Assembly (NCBI GenBank): GCA_028826165.1 | Contig: JAPDFW010000114.1 | Location: forward strand, 558,001 to 622,000 | Source of the DNA: Anaeramoeba ignava BMAN | Lineage: Eukaryota; Protista; Anaeramoebae | DNA: 64,000 nt | Reading direction: 5' to 3' | Shown: positions 22,124 to 50,250 of the stretch, one piece after another | How positions within the stretch are numbered: position 1 is the first letter of the stretch | Layout: every line of letters starts with the position of its first letter | Position numbers and translations under genes: made by a program | The notes under the pieces: generated by a model | What the model saw: the letters and a program-made list of their open reading frames with translations, nothing else | The model's database searches: none | Told to the model about the DNA's origin: nothing

Positions 22124-22219
22124 TATTTTTTATTATTTAAAAAAAAAAACCAAAAAAAAAATGAAAAATGGAAAAATTCAAAAAAAAAAATAATTTTTTC
22201 TTCTTCTTTTTCTTTTTTC

Positions 22220-22900
22220 TCATTTCTAATTTCATTTCTAATTTTAATTCCAATTTCATTTCTAATTTTAATTCTAATTTTAATTCTAATTCTAATTCTA
22301 ATTTTAATTCTAATTTTAATTCCAATTCTAATTTCAATTTCAATTTCAATTTCAATTTCAATTTCAATTTCAATTTCAATTTTAATTTCAATTCCAATTT
22401 CAATTTTAATTTTAATTCCAATTTCAATTTCAATTCCAATTTAAATTCCAATTCTAATTTCAATTTTAATTTCAATTTTAATTCCAATTCCAATTCTAAT
22501 TTCAATTTCAATTCCAATTTCAATTCCAATTTCAATTTTAATTTCAATTCAATTTTAATTTCAATTTCAATTTTAATTTTAATTTTAATTTTAATTCCAA
22601 TTCCAATTCCAATTCTAATTTCAATTCTAATTTCAATTTCAATTTCAATTTTAATTCCAATTTCAATTCCAATTTCAATTTCAATTTCAATTTTAATTTT
22701 AATTCTAATTCCAATTTCAATTTTAATTTCAATTTTAATTTCAATTTCAATTCCAATTTCAATTTTAATTCTAGTTCTAATTCCAATTTCAATTCCAATT
22801 TTAATTCTAATTTTAATTCTAATTTCAATTTCAATTTCAATTTCATTTCTAATTTTAATTCTAATTTCAATTTCAAATTAAATTAAATCAAATTAAATCA
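22220..22900. repeat. Degenerate hexamer repeat (AATTTC/AATTCC/AATTTT)n, intergenic
   Basis: Direct inspection; the overlapping ORFs are repeat artefacts. Confidence 0.9.
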
Positions 22901-23125: not shown

Positions 23126-24250
23126 ATGGATAATTATGAAACTGCACCAATAGTTATTGATAATGGTTCAGGAATGATTAAAGTAGGATTTGCAGGAGAT
23201 GAGGCACCAAAAAAAGTTTTTCCTTCAATAATTGGAAGACCAAAACATTTAGGAGTTATGGTAGGAATGGGACAAAAAGATTCATATGTTGGAGATGAAG
23301 CTCAAGCCAAAAGTGTTATTTTAAATTTAAACTATCCAATAGAACATGGAATAATAACAAATTGGGATGATATGGAAAAGATTTGGAATTATACTTTTTA
23401 TAATGAATTAAGAGTTGCTCTTGAAGAACGCCCAATTTTAATAACTGAAGCTCCATTAAATCCAAAATCAAATAGGGAAAAAATAACTCAAATTATGTTT
23501 GAAACATTTAATGTTCCTGCATTTTATCTTGAAAATTCATCAATTTTACCACTTTATGAATCAAGAAGAACAACTGGAATTGTTATTGAAATTGGATATG
23601 GAGTTACTTCTGTTGTTCCAATTTATGAAGGATATGCTCCACCTCATGCAACACAAACAATGTTTGTAGCAGGAAGAGATTTAACTGATTATTTAATGAA
23701 ATTATTAAATGAAAAAGGATATTCATTTCAAACAACTGCTGAAAGAGAAATTGTTAGAGAGATTAAAGAAAAACTTGGATATGTTGCTTTGGATTTTGAT
23801 GAAGAAATGAAAAAAGAATTAAATTTAATTGAAAAAGATTATGAATTACCTGGTGAAGAATTAATTAAAATTGGAAATGAAAGATTTAGATGTTCAGAAC
23901 CTTTATTTGAGCCTTCTTTACTTGATTTAATCAATGATGGACTTCATGAAATGATTTATAATTCAATTATGAAATGTGATGAAGATATAAGAAAAGATCT
24001 TTTTGGAAATATTGTTTTATCAGGAGGTTCGACATTGTTTCCAGGAATTGATGAAAGAATTAAAAAAGAAATTACTCAATTAGCTCCTCCAAATACTGAA
24101 ATTGAAATTATTGCACCTCCTGAAAGAAAATATTCAACTTGGATTGGTGGATCTATTTTAACTTCTCTTTTTACTTTCCAAAAGATGTGGATTTCAAAAG
24201 AAGAATATGAAGAATCAGGACCTTCAATAGTTCACAGAAAATGTTTTTGA
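23126..24250 (+). CDS. act: Divergent actin, paralog 1 (374 aa; canonical D-loop; Q137S, H161S, D157Y)
   Basis: [62 protein letters not shown]. Confidence 0.95.
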
Positions 24251-24991
24251 AACAAATTTGAAATGAATTTTTCATCTTTCATTTCTTTTTTCAATTTCAA
24301 AATCAAATTAAATTATATTAAATCAAATCAAATTAAATCAAATCAAATTCAAATCCAATTAAATTAAATTTAATCAAATTATATCAAATCAAATCAAATC
24401 AAATCAAATCAAATTAAATTCAAATCAAATTAAATTAAATCAAATTCAAATCCACTTTTTTTTTTCTTTTTTTCTTTTCAAAAATCAAATGAAATCGATC
24501 AAAACACAGAAATCTTTTTATTCCAAATTTTTATTCCAAATTTTTATTCCAAATTATTTTATTCCAATTTTTTTATTCCAAATTTTTTTATTCCAATTTT
24601 TTTATTCCAATTTTTTTATTTCAAATTTGCTTATTCCAATTTTTATTCCTAATTTTTTTATTCCCAATTTTTTTATTCCAATTTTGATTTTTAAAAAGTT
24701 TTTAATGTAAAATGTTAATTGAAAGTAAAATTAAATTTTGATTTTTAAAAAGAAAAAGAAAAAATAAAAGAAAAAATAATAAATCTCTATTTTTAAAAAA
24801 ATTAAAATAATAAAAATATTATAAAAAAAAGAAAAGAAAAAAAAATATAAAAAGAAAAATTTTTTTTTTGGATTATTTTTTCATTCCATTTTATTTTATC
24901 TTTTAATCTTTTTATCTTTTAATCTTTTAATCTTTTAATCTTTTTATTCCTTTTTATTTTTATCTTTTAATCTTTATTTTGAAATTAAAAA

Positions 24992-25636
24992 ATGAATCGA
25001 ACAAAAAAAACAAATGAAAGATCAGATTTTGAATATCATATTGTATGTTTTGGAGCAGGAGGTTCAGGAAAAAGTGCATTAACAATTATGCTTTGTCACA
25101 ATCACTTTGCAGAAGAATATGATCCAACAATCGAAGATTTTTATAGAAAACAAGTTATGGTTGATGAAGAGATTTGTTGGATGGAAATATTAGACACAGC
25201 AGGTCAAGAAGAATATTCAGCAATGAGAAGTCAATATTATCGACAAGGTGAAGGTTTTCTTTTGATTTATGCAATTAATGATAGAAATTCTTTTGATGAA
25301 GTTGGAAAATTTCAAAATGAAATTTTGAGAGCAAAAGATTCTGATTATCAACCAATTGTTCTTGTTGGAAATAAAGCTGATTTGGATTGTGAAAGACAAG
25401 TTTCTTTCCATGAAGGTCAAGATTTGGCTAAAACTTTTGGTTGTTCTTTTATTGAAACTTCTGCGAAAACTTGTATTAATGTTGAAGAAGCTTTTTTTCA
25501 ATGTGTTAGAGAAATTAGAAAATTTAGAAATCAATTTAATTCTATTGATTCTCAAATCCAAAAAAATCCAAATCTTAAAAAATCTAAAAAAAGAGTTGTT
25601 AAGAAAAAAAGAAAAACAAGATGTAGTTTGATGTGA
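24992..25636 (+). CDS. ras: Ras-subfamily small GTPase with polybasic tail and CaaX box (CSLM)
   Basis: GAGGSGKS, effector loop [32 protein letters not shown]. Confidence 0.95.
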
Positions 25637-25784
25637 AAAAAACAACAAAATCAAAAATTAATTTCATTTCTTTTATTGAAAATGATTATTTTTTTTTAAT
25701 TTTGTTTTTAAATTCTTTGTTTGTTTTGTTTTTGAAATAAATTTAAATTTGAAAATTTAATTTTCATTTTTTTTCTTTTCAAAA

Positions 25785-27596
25785 ATGAATGATTGTTTAT
25801 TTTTTGGTTTAAATGAAAACCCAAAACTTATCAAAAATGAACCAAATAAAATAAAAAAACCAATTCAATTTAAATTTGAAAATGAAAATGAAAATGAAAA
25901 AGAAAAACAAATTAAACAAATTTCATCAGGTTATTTTTCAACAATTTTCCTTTTTAAAAATGGAAAAGCAATAGAATACTTATTTAATTCAAATCAAAAT
26001 CCTCAAAAAATCCAAATTGAAAATATTCAAAAAGTAACTGTTGGTGCTAGAAATGAAGCTATTTTAACAATAGAAAGAAATGTATTTGCAAAAGGAAGAG
26101 ATATTAATTCAGATAATCCAAAAGAATTTATCAATATTTCATCATTAATTGAAGATACAAATGATAGAATAATTCAAGATATTGTTTCTGGAGATGGTTC
26201 AATTTACTTATTAACTTCAAATCAAAATGTTTATGGAATTGGTTCTAATAAATATGGTAAACTTGGTTTTGATTCTAAAACACTTCCAAAAACAGAAAAA
26301 CCAATTTTAATGATGAAAAATGTTTCTAAAATATTTTCAGGAAATTATTCAAATCATATTTTTCTTTTAAATTCAAATCAAGAATTATTTGTATGCGGTG
26401 ATAATCAATATGGTCAACTTGGATTAGGAGAATTAAGAAAAGAAAGGGAAATCCGAAAATTAACCAAAATCCAAAATATTCCAAAAGGAGAAATAATTGA
26501 TATTCAATGTGGATATTCTCATTCAATAATGTTGATTGAAAATGAAGATGAAAATCAAAATCCAAAAAGAAAACTTTATTCATGTGGAAATTATCTATAT
26601 AATGGACTTGACAAATATCAAAATACTTATGAATTTACTGAAATTAAATCATCTTTATTTGAAAATGATGATAATATTCTTGATTTTTCTGTTGATTATT
26701 CTCATACTTTGATTTTAACATCTAATTCAAAATTAATAGTATTTGGAGATAATAGATATGGTGAATTAGGAACTGGAAATACAGAAAATCAAATAATTCC
26801 AATTCAAATTGAACTTCCTAAATTAAGATTTAATGAAGAAATTTCCAATTATCATATTTCTTGTGGAGATAATAAATCATTTCTTTATTATTCTCCCCCT
26901 TCTTTTTCTAATCTTGAAGAAGATTTGATAAAACTATTTCAAAGAAAAGAATTTTGTGATATTTCATTTAAAACAGAAAATGGAGAAATAATTGAAGCTC
27001 ATAAATTAATATTAAAATATAGATTAAATCAAAATCAAAATGAAATTGAAAAACTTCAAGAAATTATTTCAAAAAAATCAATTAAAGAATCAAATCAAAT
27101 ATTTGAAATGATTTATTCAAACAGAATAATAAATCCAATATTATATTCTGAAATTAAAGAAATTATAAATTCAAATGAAAAAATTGAAGAAACAATGAAA
27201 AGAATTTATTTAAATGAAAATGAAAATGAAAATGAAAAAGATTTTATAATTGAAAGAAATGAAAAACAATATAAATTTCCTAAATTAATATTAATAATGA
27301 GAAGTGAATTATATCGAGGAATGTTTTTATCTGTAACTGAAGATAAATCTAATAAAGTTACAGATTATAGTGAATTAAGTAATAAATCATTTCAAATATT
27401 TGAATATTGGATTTATTCAAATCAAATTAAAGAAGGAATTCAAATTACACAAGAAATCATTGATGATTTAGAAACAGGAATTGATTATTTTCAATTAAAT
27501 CAAACAAATCCAAATTTATTTGATTTATTAATTAAAAATTTAATAATCAAAAAGAACAATCCAAATCAAAATATAATCCAAATTGGGATTTACTAG
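25785..27596 (+). CDS. RCC1-repeat (RLD) + BTB/POZ domain protein
   Basis: RCC1 repeats (GSNKYGKLG, CGDNQYGQLGLG, CGYSHS, FGDNRYGELGTG) followed by two BTB-like segments (FCDISF...IEAHKLIL; KDFII...FPKLILIMRSELYRGMF). Confidence 0.85.
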   Translation: MNDCLFFGLNENPKLIKNEPNKIKKPIQFKFENENENEKEKQIKQISSGYFSTIFLFKNGKAIEYLFNSNQNPQKIQIENIQKVTVGARNEAILTIERNVFAKGRDINSDNPKEFINISSLIEDTNDRIIQDIVSGDGSIYLLTSNQNVYGIGSNKYGKLGFDSKTLPKTEKPILMMKNVSKIFSGNYSNHIFLLNSNQELFVCGDNQYGQLGLGELRKEREIRKLTKIQNIPKGEIIDIQCGYSHSIMLIENEDENQNPKRKLYSCGNYLYNGLDKYQNTYEFTEIKSSLFENDDNILDFSVDYSHTLILTSNSKLIVFGDNRYGELGTGNTENQIIPIQIELPKLRFNEEISNYHISCGDNKSFLYYSPPSFSNLEEDLIKLFQRKEFCDISFKTENGEIIEAHKLILKYRLNQNQNEIEKLQEIISKKSIKESNQIFEMIYSNRIINPILYSEIKEIINSNEKIEETMKRIYLNENENENEKDFIIERNEKQYKFPKLILIMRSELYRGMFLSVTEDKSNKVTDYSELSNKSFQIFEYWIYSNQIKEGIQITQEIIDDLETGIDYFQLNQTNPNLFDLLIKNLIIKKNNPNQNIIQIGIY

Positions 27597-27611
27597 ATTC
27601 ACTAATTTTCC

Positions 27612-27955
27612 AAAATTAAAATCAAAATCAAAACTAAAATCAAAATCAAAATCAAAATCAAAATCAAAATCAAAATCAAAATCAAAATTAAAATCAAAAT
27701 TAAAATCAAAATTAAAATCAAAATCAAAATTAAAATCAAAATTAAAATTAAAATCAAAATTAAAATTAAAATTAAAATTAAAATTAAAATTAAAATTAAA
27801 ATTAAAATTAAAATTAAAATTAAAAATTAAAATTAAAATTAAAATTAAAATTAAAATTAAAATTAAAATTAAAATTAAAATTAAAATTAAAAATTAAAAT
27901 CAAAATTAAAAATTAAAATCAAAATTAAAATCAAATAATCAAAATTAAAATCAAA
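27612..27955. repeat. (AAAATT/AAAATC)n hexamer repeat, intergenic
   Basis: Direct inspection. Confidence 0.9.
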
Positions 27956-28122
27956 TAATCTTTTTATTCCAATTTTTTTTTGGATTTGATTTAGAAAAAG
28001 GAGAAAAATTACAAAAATTTCCCTATTTATTTAAAATTCTCAATTTTTTTTTTCATTTTTTCGTTTTCTCATTTTTTTTTTACAAATAATCAAAAAACCC
28101 TAATTACAAAAATAAATTAAAA

Positions 28123-29244
28123 ATGGAAAAAGAAATTAAAACAATAGTTATTGATAATGGTTCAGGAATGATTAAAGCAGGATTTGCAGGAGATGATGCA
28201 CCAAGAACAGTTTTTCCTTCAATAATTGGAAGACCAAGAAATTCAGGAGATAAAATTGAAAAAGAAGAAAAAGAATATTATATTGGAGAAGAAGTTCAAT
28301 CCAAAAGAGATATTTTAAGTTTAAATTATCCAATAGAACATGGAATAATAAAAGATTGGGATGATATGGAAAAGATTTGGAATTATACTTTTGAAAATGA
28401 ATTAAAAGTTAAATCTGAAGAACATCCAATTTTAATAACTGAAGTTCCATTAAATCCAAAACAAAATAGGGAAAAAATAACTCAAATTATGTTTGAAACA
28501 TATAATGTTCCTGCATTTTATATTGCAAATTCAGCAGCTTTATCACTCTATATAACGGAAAGAACAACAGGAATTGTTATTGAAATTGGAGATGGAGTTA
28601 CTTCTGTTGCTTCAATTTATGAAGGATATGTTTTACCTCATACAATGAAAAGAGTGGGTTTTGCAGGAAGAGATTTAACTGAATATTTAATGAAATTATT
28701 AAAAGAAAAAGGATATTCATTTCAAACAAATACAGAAAGAGAAGTTGTTAGAGATATTAAAGAAAAACTTGGATATATTGCTTTGGATTTTGATGAAGAA
28801 ATGAAAAAAGAATCAAATTTAATTGAAAAAGAATATAAATTACCTAATGGAGAAGTTATTAAAATTGGAAATGAAAGATTTAAATGCTCAGAACCTTTAT
28901 TTGGCATTTCTTTACTTGATTTTTTATATGAAGGAGTTCATGAAATGATTTATAATTCAATTATGAAATGCGATAAAGATATAAGAAATGATCTTTATGG
29001 AAATATTGTTTTATCAGGTGGTTCAACAATGTTTCCAGGAATTGTTGAAAGAATTAAAAAAGAAATTACTTCATTAGCTCCTCCAAATACTGAAATTAAA
29101 ATTATTGCACCTCCTGAAAGAATATATTCAGCTTGGATTGGAGGATCTCTTTTACCATATGAGAACTATTCCGGAAATATGTGGATTTCAAAAGAGGAAT
29201 ACAAAGAATCAGGAGTTTCAATAGTTCACAGAAAATGCTTTTGA
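28123..29244 (+). CDS. act: Divergent actin, paralog 2 (373 aa; charged D-loop; Q137S, H161S)
   Basis: [46 protein letters not shown]. Confidence 0.95.
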
Positions 29245-29277
29245 AAGAAGTTTGAAATGAATTTTTCATTTCAACTC

Positions 29278-30580
29278 AATTTCAATTCAAATTCAAATCA
29301 AATTCAAATCAAATTCAAATCAAATTCAAATCAAATTCAAATCAAATTCAAATCAAATTAAATTAAATTAAATTTAAATCAAACTAAATCAAATTAAATC
29401 AAATTAAATTAAATTAAATTAAATTAAATTAAATTAAATTAAATTAAATCAAATCAAATTAAATTAAATTAAATTCAAATTAAATTAAATTAAATTAAAA
29501 TCAAATCAAATCAAATTAAATTAAATTAAAATCAAATCAAATCAAATTTAAATTAAATTAAATTAAATTAAATTAAATCAAATTAAATCAAATCAAATCA
29601 AATTAAATTAAATCAAATTCAATTAAATCAAATCAAATTAAATCAAATTAAATCAAATTAAATCAAATTTAAATCAAATTCAAATTAAATTAAATTAAAT
29701 CAATTCAATTCAAATCAAATTTAAATTAAATTAAATTAAATTAAATTAAATCAAATTAAATCTAAATCAAATTAAATTAAATCAAATCAAATCAAATTAA
29801 ATCAAATCAAATCAAATTAAATTAAATTAATTCAAATCAAATCAAATTAAAATAAATTAAATCAAATCAAATTAAAATTAAATTAAATTAAATTAAATTA
29901 AATTAAATTAAATTAAATTAAATTAAATCAAATCAAATTTAAATCAAATTTAAATTAAATTAAATTAAATTAAATTGAATAAAATTAAATCAAATCAATT
30001 CAATTCAATTCAAATTCAAATCAAATCAAATTAAATTAAATTGAATAAAATTAAATTAAATCAAATTAAATTCAATTAAATCAAATCAAATCAAATCAAA
30101 TTCAAATTAAATCAATTCAATTCAATTCAAATTCAAATCAAATTCAAATCAAATCAAATTAAATTAAATCAAATTCAAATTGAATAAAATTAAATTAAAT
30201 TAAAATTAAATTAAATCAAATTTAAATTAAATTAAATCAATTCAATTCAATTCAAATTCAATTCAAATTCAAATCAAATCAAATTAAATTAAATTAAATT
30301 AAATCAAATTAAATCAAATTTAAATCAAATTAAATTAAATTTAAATCAAATTAAATTAAATTAAATTAAATTAAATTAAATTAAATCAAATCAAATTAAA
30401 TTAAATCAAATCAATTCAAATCAATTCAAATCAAATTCAAATTAAATTAAATCAAATTAAATCAAATTTAAATCAAATTCAAATTAAATCAAATCAAATT
30501 TAAATCAAATTCAAATTAAATTAAATCAAATCAAATTAAATTAAATTCAAATTAAATCAAATTAAATTGAATAAAATTAA
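29278..30580. repeat. About 1.3-kb (AAATT/AAATC)n pentamer repeat between actin paralogs 2 and 3
   Basis: Direct inspection. Confidence 0.92.
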
Positions 30581-30757
30581 ATAATTTTTTTATATTCCAC
30601 TTTTTTTTTTGATTATTTGATTTAAAAAAAAAAAGAAAAGGAGAAAAAAAATATTTAAAAAAAATTTAAATTCAAATTCCCCTTTTTTATTTATTTAAAA
30701 TTCTCAATTTTTTTTTTTTCATTTTTTCGTTTTTTTCTTTCAATCTTTTAATTAAAA

Positions 30758-31879
30758 ATGGAAAAAGAAATTAAAACAATAGTTATTGATAATGGTTCAA
30801 GACTGATTAAAGCAGGATTTGCAGGAGATGATGCACCAAGAACAGTTTTTCCTTCAATAATTGGAAGACCAAGAAATTCAGGAGATAAAATTGAAAAAGA
30901 AGAAAAAGAATTTTATATTGGAGAAGAAGCTCAATCAAAAAGAGATATTTTAAGTTTAAATTATCCAATAGAACATGGAATAGTAACAGATTGGGATGAT
31001 ATGGAAAAGATTTGGAATTATACTTTTGAAAATGAATTAAAAGTTAAACCTGAAGAACATCCAATTTTAATAACTGAAGTTCCATTAAATCCAAAACAAA
31101 ATAGGGAAAAAATAACTCAAATTATGTTTGAAACATATAATGTTCCAAAATTTTATATTGCAATATCACCATTTTTACCAATTTATACATCAGGAAAAGG
31201 TTCAGGAATTGTTATTGATATTGGAGATGGAGTTACTTCTGTTATTCCAATTTTTGAAAGATATGCTTTTCCTCATGCAATACAAAGAATGAATTTTGCA
31301 GGAAGAGATTTAACTGATTATTTAATGAAATTATTAAAAGAAAAAGGATATTCATTTGAAACAAATACAGAAAGAGAAGTTGTTAGAGAGATTAAAGAAA
31401 AACTTGGATATGTTGCTTTGGATTTTGATGAAGAAATGAAAAAAGAATCAACTTTAATTGAAAAAGAATATAAATTACCTGATGGAGAAGTTATTAAAAT
31501 TGGAAATGAAAGATTTATATGTTCAGAACTTTTATTTGACCTTTATTTACTTGATTTTTTATATTCAGGAGTTCACGAAATGATTTATAATTCAATTATG
31601 AAATGCGATAAAGATATAAGAAAAGATCTTTTTGGAAATATTGTTTTATCAGGTGGTTCAACAATGTTTCCAGGATTTGTTGAAAGAATTGAAAAAGAAA
31701 TTACTCAATTAGCTCCTCCAAATACTGAAATTGAAATTTTTGCACTTCCTGAAAGAAAATATTCAACTTGGATTGGTGGATCAATTTTAGCTTCTGTTTC
31801 AATTTCCAAAGATCAATGGATTTTAAAAGAAGAATATGAAAAATCAGGACCTACAATAGTTCACAGAAAATGTTTTTGA
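30758..31879 (+). CDS. act: Divergent actin, paralog 3 (373 aa; G15R, charged D-loop, Q137S, H161S)
   Basis: [46 protein letters not shown]. Confidence 0.95.
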
Positions 31880-32096
31880 AAGAAGTTTGAAAGGAATTTT
31901 TCAATTTAACTCAAATTCAATTCAATTCATTTAAATTCAATTCAATTCAATTCATTCTAATTAACTTTAAAATCAAATCAAATCAAATCAAGCAATCTTT
32001 TTATTCCAATTTTATTTGATTTTGATTTAAAAAAAAAGAGAAAGATTAATAAAACAAATCCAAATTCATTTTTTTCTTTCAATTTTTTAATTAAAA

Positions 32097-33216
32097 ATGG
32101 AAAAAGAAATTAAAACAATAGTTATTGATAATGGTTCAAGACTGATTAAAGCAGGATTTGGAGGAGAAGATAAACCAAAAACAATTTTTCCTTCAATAAT
32201 TGGAAGACTAAGAAATTCAGGAGATAAAATTGAAAAAGAAGAAAAAGAATATTATATTGGAGAAGAAGTTCAATCCAAAAGTGGAATTTTAAATTTAAAT
32301 TACCCAATAGAACATGGAATAATAAAAGATTGGGATGATATGGAAAAGATTTGGAATTATACTTTTGAAAATGAATTAAGAGTTAAATCTGAAGAATATC
32401 CAATTTTAATAAGTGAAGTTCCATTAAATCCAAAACCAAATAAAGAAAAAATGGCACAAATTATGTTTGAAACATAATATTCCAAAATTTCATATTTCAA
32501 TATCAACAGTTTTACCAATTTATTCATCAGGAAAAGGTTCAGGATTTGTTATTGAAATTGGTGATGGAGTTACTTCTGTTGTTTCAATTTATGAAGGATA
32601 TGCTTTTCCTGATACAATAAAAAGAGTGGATTTTGCAGGAAGAGATTTAACTGAATATTTAATGAAATTATTAAATGAAAAAGGGAATTCATTTGAAACA
32701 AATATAGAAAGAGAAATTGTTAGAGATATTAAAGAAAAACTTGGATATGTTGCTTTAGATTTTGATGAAGAAATGGAAAAACATCAAAAATTAATTGAAA
32801 CAAAATATGAATTACCTGATGGTTAAATTATTCCAATTGGAAATGAAAGATTTAGATGTACAGAATCTTTATTCCAACCTTCTTTACTTGGATTAGAATA
32901 TTCAGGAGTTCATGAAATGATTTATAATTCAATTATGAAATGTGATGAAGATATAAGAAAAGAACTTTATGGAAATATTATTTTATCAGGTGGTTCAACA
33001 ATGTTTCCAGGATTTGTTGAAAGAATTGAAAAAGAAGTTACTCAATTAGCTCCTCCAAATACAAAAATTAACACCATTGCAGATTCTTTCCGACTAGATG
33101 CAGTTTGGATTGGTGGATCAATTTTAGCTTCCATTTCCACTTTCCAAAATAAATGGATTACAAAAGAAGAATATAAAGAATCAGGAGTTTCAATAGTTCA
33201 CAGAAAATGTTTTTAA
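32097..33216 (+). pseudogene. Actin pseudogene, paralog 4
   Basis: Split over three ORFs. A 2-nt deletion at about 32474 (ACA TAA T vs ACA TAT/TTT AAT in paralogs) and an in-frame TAA at 32824-32826 where paralogs have CAA (PDGQIIPIG). Confidence 0.85.
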
Positions 33217-33360
33217 AAAAAATTAATTTGGAACTTTTTCATTTTTTAATTCCACTTTTTTATATTTTTTTTAATTTAAAAAAAAAAAGAAATTTAAATT
33301 AAGAATTTTTTTTCATTTTCATTTTTTTTTATTTTCATTTTTTTATTTTTATTTTTTTAA

Positions 33361-34524
33361 ATGGAAAAAGAAAAAGAAAAAGAAAAAGAAAATTCAAATG
33401 AAATTGAAAAAGAAATTAAAACAATAGTTATTGATAATGGTTCAGGAATGATTAAAGCAGGATTTGCAGGAAAAGATAAACCAAAAACATTTTTTTCTTC
33501 AATAATTGGAAGACCAAGAAATTCAGGAGATAAAATTGAAAAAGAAGAAAAAGAATATTATATTGGAGAAGAAGCTCAATCCAAAAGAGATATTTTAAGT
33601 TTAAATTATCCAATAGAACGTGGAATAATAAAAGATTGGAATGATATGGAAAAGATTTGGAATTATACTTTTGAAAATGAATTAGAAGTTAAACCTGAAG
33701 AATGTCCAATTTTTATAAGTGAAGCTCCATTAAATCCAAAATCAAATAAAGAGAAAATGGCACAAATTATGTTTGAAACATTTAATGTACCAGCATTTTA
33801 TGTTGAAAATTCAGCAGTTTTATCAATTTATGCATCAGGAAAATATACAGGAGTTGTTGTTGATATTGGAGATGGAGTTACTTCTGTTGTTCCAATTTAT
33901 GAAGGATATGTTTTTCTTCCTGCAATACAAAGAATGGATTTTGCAGGAAGAGATTTAACTGAATATTTAATGAGGATATTAAAAGAAAAAGGGAATTCAT
34001 TTAAAACAAACAATGAAAGAGAAATTGTTAGAGAAATTAAAGAAGAATTTGGATATGTTGCGATGGATTTTAATGAAGAAATGAATACAAAATCAAATTT
34101 AATTGAAAAAGATTATGAATTACCTGATGGTGAATTAATTAAAATTGGAAATGAAAGATTTATATGTTCAGAAATTTTATTCCAACCTTCTTTACTGGAA
34201 ATCGGGCATGAACCTATTCATAAAATGATTTATAATTCAATTCTGGCATCTGACATTTTTTGCAGAAAAGATTTTTTTGGAAATATTATTTTATCAGGTG
34301 GTTCAACAATGTTTCCAGGAATTGCTGAAAGAATTGAAAAAGAAGTTACTCAATTAGCTCCTCCAAATACAAAAATTAACACCATTGCAGATTCTTTCCG
34401 ATTAGATGCAGTTTGGATTGGTGGATCAATTTTAGCTTCCATTTCCACTTTCCAAAATAAATGGATTACAAAAGAAGAATATGAAGAATCAGGAGTTTCA
34501 ATAGTTCACAGAAAATGCTTTTAA
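33361..34524 (+). CDS. act: Divergent actin, paralog 5 (387 aa; EK-rich N-extension, charged D-loop, H73R, Q137S, H161S)
   Basis: [38 protein letters not shown]. Confidence 0.95.
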
Positions 34525-34676
34525 AAAAAATTAATTTGGAACTTTTTCATTTTTTAATTCCACTTTTTTATATTTTTTTTAATTTAAAAAAAAAGAAAGA
34601 AATTTAAATTAAGAATTTTTTTTCATTTTCATTTTTTTTTATTTTCATTTTTTTATTTTTATTTTTTAATTTGAAA

Positions 34677-35900
34677 ATGGGAATAAATCATTCTAAACAA
34701 AAAGAAAATCAAAAACAAATAAATTTATTTAATGAAGAATCTTTGGAATTCATTGAAAAAGGAAATGAAATGGAAAATCAAATTAAAGCAATAGTTATTG
34801 ATAATGGTTCAGGAATGATTAAAGCAGCATTTTCAGGAAGTAATGCACCAAGAGCATATTTCCCTTCAATAATTGGAAGACCAAAATTTTCAAAATTTAT
34901 GATTGGAGCAGGAATAAGAGAATATTATATTGGAGATGAAGCTCAATCCAAAAGTGGAATTTTAAGTTTAAATTATCCAATAGAACATGGAATAGTAACG
35001 AATTGGGATGATATGGAAAAGATTTGGAATTATACTTTTTATGATGAATTAAGAGTTGCTCCTGAAGAATACCCAATTTTAATAAGTGAAGCTCCACTAA
35101 ATCCAAAATCAAATAGAGAAAAAATAACTCAAATTATGTTTGAAACATTTAATATTCCAAAATTTTATATTTCAGTATCAGCAGTTTTATCACTTTATAA
35201 TTCAGGAAGAACAACAGGAGTTGTTGTTGATATTGGAGATGGAGTTACTTCTGTTGTTCCAATTTATGAAGGATATGCTTTACCTCATGCAATACAAAGA
35301 CTTGATGTTGGAGGAAGAGATTTAACTAAATATTTAATTCATGAAAGAATACTAGAAAATTTACTTATAAAAGGAGTTTCACAATCTTCTCAAATGAGAA
35401 TTTATACAGATATTAAAGAAAAACTTGGATATGTTGCTTTGGATTTTGATGAAGAAATGGAAAAACATCAAAAATTGATTGAAACAGAATATGAATTACC
35501 TGATGGTCAAATTATTCCAATTGGAAATGAAAGATTTAGATGTACAGAATCTTTATTCCAACCATCTTTGCTTGGATTAGAATATTCAGGAGTTCATGAA
35601 ATGATTTATAATTCAATTATGAAATGTGATGAAGATATAAGAAAAGATCTTTATGGAAATATTATTTTATCAGGTGGTTCAACATTTTTTCCAGGAATTG
35701 CTGAAAGAATTGAAAAAGAAGTTACTCAATTAGCTCCTATTCATTTTAAAACAAAAATTATTTCACCTCTTGGAAGAAAAACTGCAGTTTGGATTGGAGG
35801 ATCTATTTTGACTTCTCTTTCTACTTCTCAAAAAATGTGGATTACAAAAGAAGAATATAAAGAATCAGGACCTTCAATAGTTCACAGAAAATGCTTTTAA
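34677..35900 (+). CDS. act: Divergent actin, paralog 6 (407 aa) with MGINHSK N-terminal extension (putative N-myristoylation)
   Basis: ATG at 34677 in aaaATG context (the ORF track starts at an upstream TTG); actin motifs through to VHRKCF. Confidence 0.93.
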
Positions 35901-36050
35901 AAAAAATTAATTTGGAACTTTTTCATTTTTTAATTCCACTTTTTTATATTTTTTTTAATTTAAAAAAAGAAAGAAATTTAAATTAAGAATTTTTTTTCAT
36001 TTTCATTTTTTTTTATTTTCATTTTTTTATTTTTATTTTTTAATTTGAAA

Positions 36051-37274
36051 ATGGGAATAAATCATTCTAAACAAAAAGAAAATCAAAAACAAATAAATTT
36101 ATTTAATGAAGAATCTTTGGAATTCATTGAAAAAGGAAATGGAATGGAAAATCAAATGGAAGCAATAGTTATTGATAATGGTTCAGGAATGATTAAAGCA
36201 GCATTTTCAGGAAGTAATGCACCAAGAGCATATTTCCCTTCAATAATTGGAAGACCAAAATTTTCAAAATTTATGATTGGAGCAGGAATAAGAGAATATT
36301 ATATTGGAGATGAAGCTCAATCCAAAAGTGGAATATTAAATTTAGAATATCCAATAGAACATGGAATAATAGCAAATTGGGATGATATGGAAAAGATTTG
36401 GCATCATATTTTTTATAATGAATTAAGAGTTGCTCCTGAAGAACATCCAATTTTAATAAGTGAAGCTCCACTAAATCCAAAATCAAATAGGGAAAAAATA
36501 ACTCAAATTATGTTTGAAACATTTAATATTCCAGCATTTTATATTTCAGTATCACCAGTTTTATCACTTTATTCATCAGGAAGAACAACAGGAGTTGTTG
36601 TTGATATTGGAGATGGAGTTACTTCTGTTGCTCCAATTTATGAAGGATATGCTTTACCTCATGCAATACAAAGACTTGATGTTGGAGGAAGAGATTTAAC
36701 TAAATATTTAATTCATGAAAGAATACTAGAAAATTTACTTATAAAAGGAATTTCACAATCTGCTAAAATGAGAATTTATACAGATATTAAAGAAAAACTT
36801 GGATATGTTGCTTTGGATTTTGATGAAGAAATGGAAAAACATCAAAAATTAATTGAAACAAAATATGAATTACCTGATGGTCAAATTATTCCAATTGGAA
36901 ATGAAAGATTTAGATGCACAGAACTTTTATTCCAACCATCTTTATTTGGATTAGAATATTCAGGAGTTCATGAAATGATTTATAATTCAATTATGAAATG
37001 TGATGAAGATATAAGAAAAGATCTTTATGGAAATATTGTTTTATCAGGTGGTTCAACATTTTTTCCAGGAATTGCTGAAAGAATTGAAAAAGAAGTTACT
37101 CAATTAGCTCCTATTCATTTTAAAACAAAAATTATTTCACCTCCTGAAAGAAAATATGCAGTTTGGATTGGAGGATCTATTTTGGCTTCTCTTCCTACTT
37201 TCCAAAAAATATGGATTACAAAAGAAGAATATAAAGAATCAGGACCTTCAATAGTTCACAGAAAATGTTTTTGA
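36051..37274 (+). CDS. act: Divergent actin, paralog 7 (407 aa) with MGINHSK N-terminal extension; tandem duplicate of paralog 6
   Basis: Near-identical to paralog 6, including the upstream spacer; repeat period 1374 bp. Confidence 0.93.
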
Positions 37275-37472
37275 AAAAATTAATTTGGAACTTTTTCATT
37301 TTTTAATTCCACTTTTTTATATTTTTTTTAATTTAAAAAAAAATGAAAGAAAAATTCAATTTTTATTTTTAGTAAATCAAAAAAGAAGATTAAAAAGTGG
37401 ACTAAGAATTAAATTTGGGTGAATCTTTAGGAGAAGATTAGAGAAAAAAGAACAAAATATAATATATTGTTT

Positions 37473-38585
37473 TTATTTATCAAAATCAATATCTTCCCAT
37501 CCTAAATCATCAATTTCATTGGCTTTCTCTATTTCAGGACTAGCTTCTTGTTGATATTTTTTTAAGCGATTCTTGAAATAAAGGGCAACATGGACAAGAC
37601 CCAACATAACTGGAACTTCGACAAGAGGACCAATTGTAGCTGATAATGATTCATTACTATCCAATCCAAATACTGAAATTGTTGTTGCAATGGCAAGTTC
37701 AAAATTATTACTTGCAGCAGTGAAACTGAGAGTAGTTGATTCCTGGTAACCGAAACCCAAGCGATAAGCAATTAAAAAGGAAATGAAAAACATGAGAAAA
37801 AAATAACATAGTAATGGGATGGCGATCCGTAAAATATCTAAAGGAATTTTGAGAACTTTGTCACCTTTGAGGCTGAACATGACAAAAATTGTGAATAACA
37901 AGAAAATAAATGTTAAAGGTGATATTTTGGGGATCACATGCTTCTTGTACCATTCTTCTCCTTTTGTTTTCACAAATGCTAAATTAGTGACTATCCCCAT
38001 CAAAAAAGGAATTCCGAGATAGATGAGAACACTTATTGCAATATCCTTCATTTTCACTTTCGAACTCACAGCACCCATTTTCATTAATTTTAGCATAGGA
38101 GAAGTAAAGAACCAAGCATAAACAGAATAGAACAAAATTTGGAAAATGCTATTAAAAGCAACTAACGCTGCTGCAATTTCCCGATCTCCAAGAGCAAGAT
38201 CATTCCACACAATCACCATTGCAATGCATCTTGCTAATCCAACAAATATCAAACCTGTCATATAATCTTTGTGATCAGGAAGCATGCCTACTACTAAAAA
38301 AAACATTAAAAATGGACCAATGAACCAATTTTGAACCAAAGAGAACACAAAGAGTCTTCTGATTTTCCATAATTTTTGATGGATTTTTTCATATTTCACT
38401 TTCGCAAGCGGTGGATACATCATCAAAATCAATCCGATGGCAATAGGAACATTAGTTGACCCAATTGTCAATGAGTCCCAGAATTTTGGTATTGCAGAAA
38501 CAAATCTTCCTAACAGAAGGCCTACTACAATTGTTAAAAATATCCACAACGTTAGAAATCTATCTATGAAAGACAAACCTCCCAT
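37473..38585 (-). CDS. acr3: Acr3-family arsenite/antimonite efflux transporter (intronless)
   Basis: LSFIDRFLTLWIF, PIAIGLILMMYPPLAKVKY, QNWFIGP.LMF, GLARCIAMVIVWN (conserved Cys), AFNSIFQ, FTAASNNFELAIA, GPLVEVPVM. Confidence 0.95.
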   Translation of the reverse strand: MGGLSFIDRFLTLWIFLTIVVGLLLGRFVSAIPKFWDSLTIGSTNVPIAIGLILMMYPPLAKVKYEKIHQKLWKIRRLFVFSLVQNWFIGPFLMFFLVVGMLPDHKDYMTGLIFVGLARCIAMVIVWNDLALGDREIAAALVAFNSIFQILFYSVYAWFFTSPMLKLMKMGAVSSKVKMKDIAISVLIYLGIPFLMGIVTNLAFVKTKGEEWYKKHVIPKISPLTFIFLLFTIFVMFSLKGDKVLKIPLDILRIAIPLLCYFFLMFFISFLIAYRLGFGYQESTTLSFTAASNNFELAIATTISVFGLDSNESLSATIGPLVEVPVMLGLVHVALYFKNRLKKYQQEASPEIEKANEIDDLGWEDIDFDK

Positions 38586-38874
38586 TTACTTTCAGAAATT
38601 GAAGTTTGAAAGAAAATGTAAAAGAAAAATCAACTAAAATGAAAATAAAAATGAAAATTCAAAATAAAAAAGCATTTTTCTTTTAAATTTGATCAAATTA
38701 CCATTTAATCCCCCTAATATTTTTTTACAAACTCTCAATAATTCCAATTCAAAAAATTTCTGTTTCTCTCTATCTTTTCTTTCTCAAATCGTAACTATTT
38801 TATTATCAACCAAATGATCCCCCAAAAAAATAAAAAAAAATAAAATAATAAAATAAAATAAAATAAAATAAAAA

Positions 38875-40044
38875 TTAATTTTTATCCATTAAAGAAATTC
38901 CTATTTCTTTGTATTTTTCTTTTAAAATCCATTGATCCTGGAAACTAGAAAGTGAAGCTAAAATTGATCCTCCAATCCAAACTGAATATTTTCTTTCAGG
39001 AGGTGAAATAATTTTTGTTTTTGTTTTTGTTTTTGTATTTGAAGGAACTAATTTAATAATTTCTTTTTCAATTCTTTCAACAATTCCTGGAAATAATGTT
39101 GAACCACCTGATAAAATAATATTTCCAAAAAGATATTTTCTTATATCTTCTTTGCATTTCATAATTGAATTATAAATCATTTTATGAACTCCTGAATATT
39201 CTAATCCAAGCAAAGAAGGCTGGAATAAAAGTTCTGTACATCTAAATCTTTCATTTCCAATTGGAATAATTTGACCATCAGGTAATTCATATTTTGTTTC
39301 AATTAATTTTTGATGTTTTTCCATTTCTTCATCAAAATCCAAAGCAACATATCCAAGTTTTTCTTTAATATCTCTAACAATTTCTCTTTCTATATTTGTT
39401 TCAAATGAATTCCCTTTTTCATTTAATAATTTCATTAAATATTCAGTTAAATCTCTTCCTGCCAAATCCATTCTTTTTATTGTATCAGGAAAAGCATATC
39501 CTTCATAAATTGAAACAACAGAAGTAACTCCATCACCAATATCAACAACAACTCCTGAACCTTTTCCTGATGAATAAAGTGATAAAACTGGTGAATTTTC
39601 AACATAAAATGCTGGTACATTAAATGTTTCAAACATAATTTGTGCCATTTTCTCTTTATTTGATTTTGGATTTAATGGAACTTCACTTATTAAAATTGGG
39701 TATTCTTCAGGTTTAACTCTTAATTCATTTTCAAAAGTATAATTCCAAATCTTTTCCATATCATCCCAATTCGTTACTATTCCATGTTCTATTGGATAAT
39801 TTAAATTTAATATTCCACTTTTGGATTGAGCTTCATCTCCAATATAATATTCTTTTTCTTCTTTTTCAATTTTATCTCCTGAATTTCTTGGTCTTCCAAT
39901 TATTGAAGAAAAAAATGTTCTTGGTGCATCATCTCCTGCAAATCCTGCTTTAATCATTCTTGAACCATTATCAATAACTAATGCTTTAATTTGATTTTCA
40001 ATTTCATTTGAATTATTTTCTTTTTTAGATAAATTTGATCCCAT
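38875..40044 (-). CDS. act: Divergent actin, paralog 8 (389 aa, inverted) with MGSNLSK N-extension, G15R and an aberrant C-terminus
   Basis: [36 protein letters not shown]; ends ISLMDKN instead of VHRKCF. Confidence 0.92.
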
Positions 40045-47517: not shown

Positions 47518-50250
47518 ATGGGAAATAAACAAGAAGAGAAAATAAGAAATTTTCCTCCTAAAAAAATTAAAAAATTAGCTAAAAGATTTAAAAGATTGGA
47601 TAGAGATAAAAATAATGTTCTTACAATTGATGAATTTTTTGCAATTCCTGAATTTGTTTGCATTTATTAAATTATTTATTAAATTTATTATTAAATTTAT
47701 TATTAAATTTTTGATGAATCATTATTAAATTAATTATTAAATTATTTATTAAATTTTATATTAAATTATTTATTAAATTATTTATTAAATTATTTATTAA
47801 ATTATTTATTAAATTATTTATTAAATTATTTATTAAATTATTTATTAAATTATTTATTAAATTATTTATTAAATTATTTATTAAATTATTTATTTAATTT
47901 TATATTAAATTATTTATTAAATTATTTATTAAATTAATTATTAAATTATTTATTAAATTTATTATTAAATTATTTATTAAATTATTGATAAAATTATTTA
48001 TTAAATTATTTATTAATTTATTTATTAAATTATTTATTAAATTATTTATTTAATTTTATATTAAATTATTTATTAAATTATTTATATTATTTATTAAATC
48101 ATTTATTAAATTTTTGATTAAATTATTTATTAAATTATTTATTAAATTATTTATTAAATTATTTATGAAATTATTGATTAAATTATTTATTAAATTATTT
48201 ATTAAATTATTTATTAAATTATTTATTAAATTATTTATTAAATTATTTATATTAAATTATTTATTAAATTTATTATTAAATTTTATATTAAATTTTTATT
48301 AAATTTTTATATTAAATTATTTATTAAATTATTTATTAAATTATTTATTAAATTATATATTAAATTATATATTAAATTATTTATTAAATTATTGATTAAA
48401 TTATTTATTAAATTATTTATTAATTTTTATATTAAATTATTTATTAAATTATTTATTAAATTTTATATTAAATTATTTATTAATTTTTGATTAAATTATT
48501 TATTTAATTATTGATTAAATTATTTATTTAATTATTGATTAAATTTTTATTAAATTATTGATGAATCATTATTTATTAAATTTTTATTAAATTTTTGATT
48601 AAATTTTTGATTAAATTATTTATTAAATTATTTATTAAATTATTGATTAAATTATTTATTAAATTATTTATTAAATTATTTATTAAATTATTTATTAAAT
48701 TATTTATTAAATTATTGATTAAATTATTTATTAAATTATTTATTAAATTATTTATTAAATTTTTATTAAATTATTTATTAAATTATTGATTAAATTATAT
48801 ATTAAATTTTATATTAAATTATTTATTAAATTATTTATTAATTTATTTATTAATTTATTTATTAAATTATTTATTAAATTATTTATTAAATTATTTATTA
48901 AATTATTTATTAAATTATTTATTAAATTATTTATTATATTATTTATTAAATTATTTATTAAATTTTATATTAAATTTTATATTAAATTTTATATTAAATT
49001 ATTTATTAATTTATTTATTAAATTTTATATTAAATTTTTATTAAATTTTTATTAAATTATTTATTAAATTTTATATTAAATTTTTATTAAATTATTTATT
49101 AAATTATTTATTAAATTTATTATTAAATTATTTATTAAATTTTAGATTAAATTATTTATTAAATTTATTATTAAATTATTTATTAAATTATTGATAAAAT
49201 TATTTATTAAATTATTTATTAAATTATTTATTAAATTATTTATTAATTTATTTATTAAATTATTTATTAATTTATTTATTTATTTATTTATTAAATTATT
49301 TATGAAATTATTTATTAAATTATTTATTAAATTATTTATTAAATTATTTATTAAATTTATTATTAAATTATTGATTAAATTTTTATATTAAATTATTTAT
49401 TAAATTATTATTTATTAAATTATTTATTAAATTATTTATTAAATTATTTATTAAATTATTGATTAAATTATTTATTAAATTTTTATTAAATTATTTATTA
49501 AATTATTTATTAAATTTTATATTAAATTATTTATTAAATTATTTATTAAATTATTTATTAAATTATTTATTAAATTATTTATTAAATTATTGATTAAATT
49601 ATTTATTATATTATTGATTAAATTATTTATTAAATTATTTATTAATTTATTTATTAAATTATTTATTAAATTTTTTATTAAATTATTGATTAAATTATTT
49701 ATTAAATTATTTATTAAATTATTTATTAAATTATTTATTAAATTATTTATTAAATTATTTATTAAATCATTATTTCTCTTTTGTTTTTCAAAAAAGAATG
49801 AAAATCCTTTAAAATATCAAATTTTGAAACTTTTTGATCCTGATTCAGAAGATCCTGATTTAATTCAAGTTGATTTTACAAAATTTATTCAAACAATTAC
49901 AACAATGGTTCTTGGAACAGAAGAAGAAAAATTACATTGTAATTGAACAATTTAAATCTAAATTAAAATCTAAATTTAAATTAAAATTAATTCACCTTCT
50001 TTTATAAACAAAAACAGTTTTATTTAGAATTTTGGATTTAGATGGAGATGGATTTATTGATCAAAATGAACTTTTTGAATTACTTTATTCAATTATTGGA
50101 GATCAAGTTTCTTCAGAAGTTCTTCATGAAATTTGCCAAAATATGATTAAAGAATTTGATTTAGCAAGAAATGATGTAATTTCATTTGAAGAATTTCAAA
50201 TTTTAATGAAAAATGAAAAAATTTCAAAACAAATCCAAATTCACGTTTAA
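47518..50250 (+). CDS. Calcineurin B-like EF-hand protein; exons 47518-47655, 49797-49938, 50018-50250
   Basis: MGN start, KKLAKRFKRLDRDKNNVLTIDEF..IPEF|NENPL..ILKLFD...GTEEEKL.FLFRILDLDGDGFIDQNELF...ISFEEF, collinear with calcineurin B. Confidence 0.85.
47665..49767. repeat. About 2.1-kb 12-bp minisatellite (TTATTTATTAAA)n filling calcineurin-B-like intron 1 (47656-49796)
   Basis: Direct inspection; the IKLF-repeat ORFs are artefacts. Confidence 0.95.

Follow-up and report, generated by a model that had tools for sequence, protein, structure and literature searches.

An array of actin paralogs in Anaeramoeba ignava with serine in place of both catalytic residues, Gln137 and His161, and with probably impaired ATP hydrolysis

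Results

Actin copies at the locus

Anaeramoeba ignava is an anaerobic amoeba. We have analysed a window of 64,000 nucleotides from strain BMAN (contig JAPDFW010000114.1, positions 558,001-622,000; contig C104 in our scan of the genome, which covered 42.8 Mb in 147 contigs) and found that the span 23126-40044 contains seven intact actin open reading frames (ORFs) and one broken copy, all of them with serine at the positions of Gln137 and His161 of conventional actin. The copies are named A to H and lie as follows (window coordinates, strand, and length in amino acids, aa):

23126-24250 (+), actin paralog A: 374 aa; S137/S161 (YLENS, GYGVTS); D154E, D157Y and R177T; conventional D-loop; HRKCF end
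28123-29244 (+), actin paralog B: 373 aa; S137/S161 (YIANS); D154E and K336I; charged D-loop; HRKCF end
30758-31879 (+), actin paralog C: 373 aa; S137/S161 (YIAIS); G15R in the phosphate-1 loop; charged D-loop; HRKCF end
32097-33216 (+), actin pseudogene D: HISIS and GVTS motifs; broken frame
33361-34524 (+), actin paralog E: 387 aa; S137/S161 (YVENS); N-terminal extension of 14 aa; H73R and K336L; charged D-loop; HRKCF end
34677-35900 (+), actin paralog F: 407 aa from the first ATG; S137/S161 (YISVS); MGINHSK leader; third D-loop type; subdomain-4 segment swapped (R206M, R210T); HRKCF end
36051-37274 (+), actin paralog G: 407 aa; S137/S161 (YISVS); tandem twin of F, with 96% DNA identity
38875-40044 (-), actin paralog H: 389 aa; S137/S161 (YVENS); MGSNLSK leader; G15R; charged D-loop; divergent C-terminus without HRKCF

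The initial annotation of this stretch, made from the sequence alone, had recognised a family of eight actins here. All eight copies are indeed present at 23126-40044 and show the motifs that it listed (YLENS, YIANS, YIAIS, HISIS, YVENS, YISVS, YISVS and YVENS, in that order, and GVTS eight times), as well as the HRKCF end in seven of the eight, copy H being the exception; however, copy D turned out to be a pseudogene. The copies D to G form a close head-to-tail run with a period of ~1.3 kb. All seven intact ORFs are present, with the same ATG starts, as NCBI and UniRef gene models, although the listing of sources is uninformative about expression, as only NCBI and UniRef sources appear even for conventional actin.

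These proteins are clearly members of the actin family. Copy F matched the PF00022 profile with 435.7 bits along profile positions 3-410 of 410 (the cut-off being 27), and the seven intact copies scored 427-444 bits in the PF00022 scan of the genome. Their identity to conventional actin is 63-72% for lengths of 373-407 aa, and the 60 best matches in the PDB were all conventional actins. Additions are restricted to N-terminal leaders in E, F, G and H and to an insert of three residues in F and G, in agreement with the earlier description of these genes as actin-length and devoid of the insertions found in the actin-related protein (Arp) Arp4. In a tree built from the full-length actin-family ORFs of this genome, the nearest rows by path length were other copies from the window and conventional actins.

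Both catalytic residues are replaced in every copy

A family-wide MAFFT alignment anchored on the conventional actin of the genome, which is an exact match to KAJ5076689.1 (A. ignava), placed Ser at positions 137 and 161 in 8/8 copies. The same was obtained when copy A was aligned to the solved actin 1dej_A (HMMER, E 2e-182): residues 5-374 aligned with a single 2-residue gap, both catalytic sites were gap-free and the two Ser residues lay exactly opposite Q137 and H161. The double replacement that the initial annotation had read in every copy is thus borne out by the two alignments, and so is its statement that these residues are near-invariant in conventional actins, since among other actins of up to 420 aa retrieved from a database of 5.8 billion proteins the Q/H pair was found in 141 of 144 and S/S in none (0/144).

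Single origin, segment exchange and the broken copy

The Ser codons are identical in the eight copies, pseudogene D included (TCA at 137 and TCT at 161), and differ from CAA and CAT, respectively, at two nucleotides each. Furthermore, the seven intact copies formed one clade (82 in the Shimodaira-Hasegawa-like approximate likelihood-ratio test, SH-aLRT) in a maximum likelihood tree of the 101 full-length actin-family ORFs of the genome, and actins that keep Q/H are encoded elsewhere, so that the clade of S/S actins beside a conventional actin that had been anticipated does exist. Because the codons are the same in all eight copies and the intact ones are a single clade, the S/S state is a single ancestral event inherited by descent, and not eight independent retentions. 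The invariance of Ser had been taken in the initial annotation as a sign of selection, an argument that does not hold: 43% of the ungapped columns are invariant among the seven intact copies, the codons are shared even by the pseudogene and the copies exchange segments, so the invariance of two chosen columns is no evidence of selection on Ser.

This exchange is visible in the nearest partner of each copy, which switches along the gene at 94-100% DNA identity, as expected if the copies swap segments by gene conversion or unequal crossing-over. Copy D is itself a mosaic with segments 94-99% identical to the others, its 5' part being nearest to B/C, the middle to H, the next stretch to F/G and the 3' end to E. 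Its frame is broken by a deletion of 2 bp near 32474, and the CAA of the sister copies is changed at 32824-32826 to an in-frame TAA. These lesions are probably genuine and not assembly errors, as Medaka and five Pilon rounds were used to polish the assembly (PMC11550330). Frameshifts or premature stops, the hallmarks of a pseudogene, are present in copy D only and absent from the other seven.

We have searched for relatives of the clade with full-length copy A, with a profile of the seven copies and with a piece of 231 aa from copy B that was chosen to leave out double-actin fusions. The proteins of the window itself came first (454-508 bits for the pieces), followed by conventional actins at ~340-410 bits, and no member of the clade from outside the locus, in A. 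ignava or in any other organism, was among the matches listed, although a diverged A. flamelloides relative could be missed. According to these searches, the clade seems to be confined to this locus.

A remodelled catalytic site in a preserved nucleotide pocket

Positions that contact the nucleotide or take part in catalysis are preferentially conserved in the clade, 20 of 28 being invariant as compared to 142 of 341 elsewhere in the protein (Fisher p=0.003), and 15 of these 20 invariant residues are the same as in conventional actin. The copies therefore have the attributes of a pseudoenzyme, in which catalytic residues are lost while the fold and the ligand pocket are kept. No more than 22 positions are both fixed in the clade and unlike conventional actin, most of them conservative swaps, and five of these 22 are in the pocket (137, 155, 160, 161 and 303) with two more adjoining it (162 and 304); the substitutions are Q137S, H161S, T155I, S160T, T162V, T303S and S304T. 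What defines the clade is thus a remodelled catalytic site inside an otherwise preserved nucleotide pocket. The initial annotation had proposed that the ATP-binding scaffold is kept, and this stands insofar as the pocket is conserved above background, but not for every copy: there is G15R (DNGSR) in C, D and H, D157Y in A, D154E in A and B, K336I/L in B and E, H73R in E, and R206M together with R210T in F and G.

The surface is far more variable. The D-loop region (actin residues 38-52) occurs as three discrete types, with the conventional hydrophobic type only in A, a charged type in B, C, D, E and H, and a third type in F and G, a distribution over the copies that fits segment exchange. The hydrophobic plug is 15-53% identical to that of conventional actin and subdomain 4 also varies among copies. 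In F and G a segment of subdomain 4 (~residues 190-210) is replaced by one that is 3 aa longer (window 35319-35426 in F, and the equivalent in G) and is 61% identical to the same segment in S137/H161 paralogs on contig C62 (L018:1489-2694(-) and L011:7-1161(-)). This likeness suggests either exchange between loci or shared ancestry. We also considered that the segment could be a frameshifted stretch, which was rejected because no alternative frame brings back actin sequence.

Copies F, G and H start with MGINHSK or MGSNLSK (34677-34700, 36051-36074 and 40021-40044 (-)), ahead of leaders of 13-30 residues. Read from sequence alone, the Gly2 and Ser6 pattern of these leaders resembles an N-myristoylation signal.

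The intact copies are under relaxed purifying selection

Coding constraint was estimated as omega (dN/dS) by pairwise codon likelihood (GY94 with F3x4), a procedure that was validated on pairs of conventional actins. Within the array, omega ranged from 0.29 to 0.84 with a median of 0.46, and omega=1 was rejected in 16 of the 21 pairs of the seven intact copies. By this procedure, omega was 0.04 for pairs of conventional A. ignava actins, 0.22 between conventional actin and the copies A and G, and 0.47-0.68 for other tandem actin clusters of the genome, which are similar to the array in this respect. A Nei-Gojobori estimate (dN/dS 0.9-2.2) was discarded as an artefact of extreme codon composition, the GC content at third codon positions (GC3) being 6-10% in the array copies as against 11-23% in conventional actins.

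In addition, we simulated the appearance of stops by placing the observed number of differences of each copy randomly on the consensus of the array, with the observed substitution spectrum and the terminal stop excluded. Each copy acquired 5-8 premature stops in this way, and the frame remained open in at most 0.3% of the trials (P(open) ≤0.003). The indels of the intact copies are all multiples of three. Given the open frames, the omega values below 1 and the in-frame indels, the seven copies have evolved as coding sequence and are under purifying selection, but with a constraint that is roughly ten-fold relaxed in comparison to conventional actin; the values well below 0.1 that are typical of the strong purifying selection on conventional actin were not found in the array. 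The purifying selection that the initial annotation had proposed to look for is therefore there, though in a relaxed form.

Loss of the catalytic pair is widespread in the genome

The array is a local sample of a genome-wide pattern and is not special in this regard. The genome has at least 107 PF00022 matches (loci L001-L091), of which 101 full-length ORFs were tabulated, and many of its actins lie in tandem clusters (on C73, C62, C68, C11, C136 and C64). Both Q137 and H161 are kept in only 11 of these 101 ORFs and both are lost in 49, so that ~90% of the full-length actin ORFs are without one or both catalytic residues. The S/S combination occurs in 13 ORFs, seven of them in this array and the others in several clades (L056, L033, L050, L060, L041 and L085). 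Position 137 is occupied by Q in 40 ORFs, S in 39 and T in 8, and position 161 by H in 23, S in 18, Y in 17, Q in 14, F in 10 and N in 8. The codons of S137 are all TCN, while those of S161 are of two kinds, TCT and AGT, so that S161 must have arisen at least twice.

Actin is not a subject of the main text of the Anaeramoeba genome paper, its only trace there being a truncated PANTHER row of a supplementary table; the same row gives many actin copies for A. flamelloides too.

Discussion

Probable biochemistry of the array

We have described a young actin paralog array which, in our opinion, is probably specific to A. ignava and made up of proteins that bind nucleotide and hydrolyse ATP poorly. 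A single ancestral gene gained the remodelled catalytic site (Q137S and H161S together with T155I, S160T, T162V, T303S and S304T) and was then amplified locally to eight copies, which keep swapping segments by gene conversion or unequal crossing-over; seven of them still code for protein under relaxed purifying selection and the eighth is dead. In these proteins the contacts to phosphate and adenine are largely kept, but neither of the side chains that place the attacking water and activate it is left, and for this reason the expected product would be a protein with an actin fold that binds ATP or ADP with slow hydrolysis or none. Work on other proteins points in the same direction. In actin the attacking water is arranged by flipping of His161 (PMC10062479, PMC9618068), the ATPase activity of Q137A actin is low (PMC10062479, citing Iwasa 2008), Arp2 and Arp3 no longer hydrolyse ATP with either Q137A or H161A, and ParM is without ATPase activity when it carries the mutation that corresponds to Q137A (PMC3587832). 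As these engineered mutants at the same positions are hydrolysis-defective, nucleotide binding with slow or absent hydrolysis is the most likely biochemistry of the array. We infer this, and likewise any role in filaments, from the residues that are kept and lost. The copies vary in the D-loop, the hydrophobic plug and subdomain 4, and probably also in their ability to polymerise or to join conventional filaments and in the way they would do so.

Several observations weigh against this reading. Ser keeps a hydroxyl group, and in crystals of Q137A actin waters stand in for the Gln side chain (PMC10062479), so residual hydrolysis is possible. Nucleotide binding itself may be damaged in some copies by G15R (C and H), D157Y (A) or K336I/L (B and E). 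The constraint is weak (median omega 0.46 versus 0.04 in conventional actins), and with one copy a pseudogene and no ortholog found outside the locus nothing speaks for long-term retention. Moreover, recombination among the copies makes both the tree-based and the pairwise estimates approximate. The proposal of the initial annotation, a clade of nucleotide-binding but hydrolysis-deficient actins, is thus plausible in view of the conserved pocket and the coding constraint, but that constraint is weak, one member is dead and the trait extends throughout the genome.

It could also be argued that the array is just the surplus of birth-and-death evolution, that is, recent duplicates without distinct function that are drifting to pseudogenes and in which Ser is inherited baggage. 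The omega values of 0.29-0.84, ten times those of conventional actin, would be explained in this way, as would the death of copy D, the loss of the C-terminus in copy H, the pocket-damaging changes in several copies, the lack of an ortholog elsewhere among the matches listed and a GC3 (6-10%) below that of conventional actins (11-23%). However, seven frames are open where neutral change predicts 5-8 stops in each, omega=1 is rejected in 16/21 pairs, pocket residues are preferentially conserved and indels occur in frame only, and we consider this explanation rather unlikely. We would give a still smaller chance to the copies being working ATPases, in which Ser137, Ser161 and bound waters support useful hydrolysis and which would be ordinary dynamic isoforms with an altered dyad. 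In favour of this view are the crystals of Q137A actin, in which two waters fill the space of the Gln side chain and leave the attacking water where it is (PMC10062479). Across the family, Ser replaces Gln137 more often than any other residue (39/101) and is frequent at 161 (18/101), and the at least two codon routes to S161 (TCT and AGT) hint at Ser as a favoured solution. Against this, the ATPase activity of Q137A actin is low (PMC10062479), the single Q137A and H161A changes are each enough to stop Arp2 and Arp3 from hydrolysing ATP, and the equivalent of Q137A deprives ParM of its ATPase activity (PMC3587832), whereas here both residues are lost and D154, from the same network, is also changed in two copies.

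It is hardly conceivable that the array belongs to a known Arp subfamily in which such substitutions are normal. The known divergence of the catalytic site in nuclear Arps, for instance Arp4 and Arp8, would speak for this assignment. However, the copies have 373-407 aa and an identity to conventional actin of 63-72%, the alignment to solved actins is nearly gap-free over 370 residues (one 2-residue gap), conventional actins make up the 60 best PDB matches, and the nearest rows in our tree of this genome's ORFs are window copies and conventional actins. A much broader reading would be that A. ignava has a large natural repertoire of hydrolysis-dead actins, of which this array is an actively diversifying module, the products serving as stable non-treadmilling scaffolds or caps, or as decoys or sensors for bacterial actin-targeting toxins, and to this we attach only a slim chance. 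Gene conversion would then shuffle surface loops (the D-loop, the T148 segment, R177, the plug and subdomain 4) under diversifying pressure, some products could be anchored to membranes via their myristoylation-type MG leaders, and a decoy or sensor role would be set in an amoeba that lives with intracellular symbionts. If true, the scaffold, cap, decoy or sensor role would have no described counterpart in the cytoskeleton of other eukaryotes.

Comparison to known systems

The array copies that we propose to be nucleotide-binding and poor in hydrolysis share with conventional actin (KAJ5076689.1; 1dej, 1nlv and 1yag) the fold, the length, the Pfam family and 63-72% identity. DNGS..K, G156/G158, K213/E214, G301/G302 and F306 are kept, as are H73 in 6/7 intact copies and HRKCF in 7/8. 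They differ from it in having Q137S and H161S in every copy and a remodelled P2 loop (T155I, S160T and T162V), in that the D-loop is replaced in 7/8 copies (6/7 of the intact ones) and the plug is only 15-53% identical, and in a dN/dS of ~0.46 versus 0.04. Among the divergent minor actins of protists, those of Dictyostelium discoideum other than Act8, and its actin pseudogenes (PMC2441452), offer a parallel at the level of the family, with many intronless genes, some of them clustered, some divergent and some pseudogenes, and a birth-and-death pattern of evolution is common to both organisms. Unlike Dictyostelium, with 41, A. ignava has at least 107 matches and its catalytic pair is replaced systematically; Q137 or H161 are nowhere mentioned in PMC2441452.

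The engineered Q137A actin, the Q137A/H161A forms of Arp2/Arp3 and the ParM equivalents (PMC10062479, PMC3587832) lose the catalytic side chains at the same two positions, but in the array the change is natural and double, the new residue is Ser and not Ala, it is fixed in a gene clade and it comes with further remodelling of the pocket. Nuclear Arps (Arp4/BAF53 and Arp8; PMC3510490) resemble the array in their actin fold and in being thought to bind nucleotide without the hydrolysis-driven dynamics of actin; however, they have large insertions, are far more diverged and have ancient conserved orthologs, whereas the array copies are insertion-free, young and species-specific. Divergent actin paralogs were already known, and what is new here is the replacement of the whole catalytic dyad in insertion-free actins.

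Q137 and H161 couple polymerisation to ATP hydrolysis and to the ageing of the filament, and actins without insertions hardly ever have other residues at these positions. A coding clade that lacks both residues and conserves the pocket would be a ready-made experiment on the behaviour of actin, as filament or as monomer, in the absence of hydrolysis. The less expected result, and the main source of interest, is the genome-wide scale of the loss, with only 11 of 101 ORFs keeping both residues, which suggests a cytoskeleton made of a few conventional actins and many catalytically altered paralogs. Such a mixed cytoskeleton could be of consequence for the amoeboid motility of Anaeramoeba, for its phagocytosis and for its elaborate symbiosome. 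If the copies were untranscribed, the finding would shrink to a case study of birth-and-death gene-family evolution.

Neighbouring genes and composition

The array is interrupted by non-actin genes, namely a Ras-family GTPase gene and an RCC1-BTB gene between A and B (24992-27596) and a transporter gene between G and H that serves here only as a landmark:

37473-38585 (-), ACR3-family arsenite efflux transporter gene: not a member of the actin family

The ACR3 gene is intronless, matches TIGR00832 with 404 bits and lies where the GC content of the neighbourhood peaks (~28%), in a window with a GC content of ~20%, and it is a candidate for bacterial acquisition. Finally, the ORF at 22168-22881 is only the translation of a low-complexity N/F/S/I repeat, and the stretches 1-2000 and 48001-50000 of the window are extremely AT-rich, with 9% and 3.6% GC, respectively.

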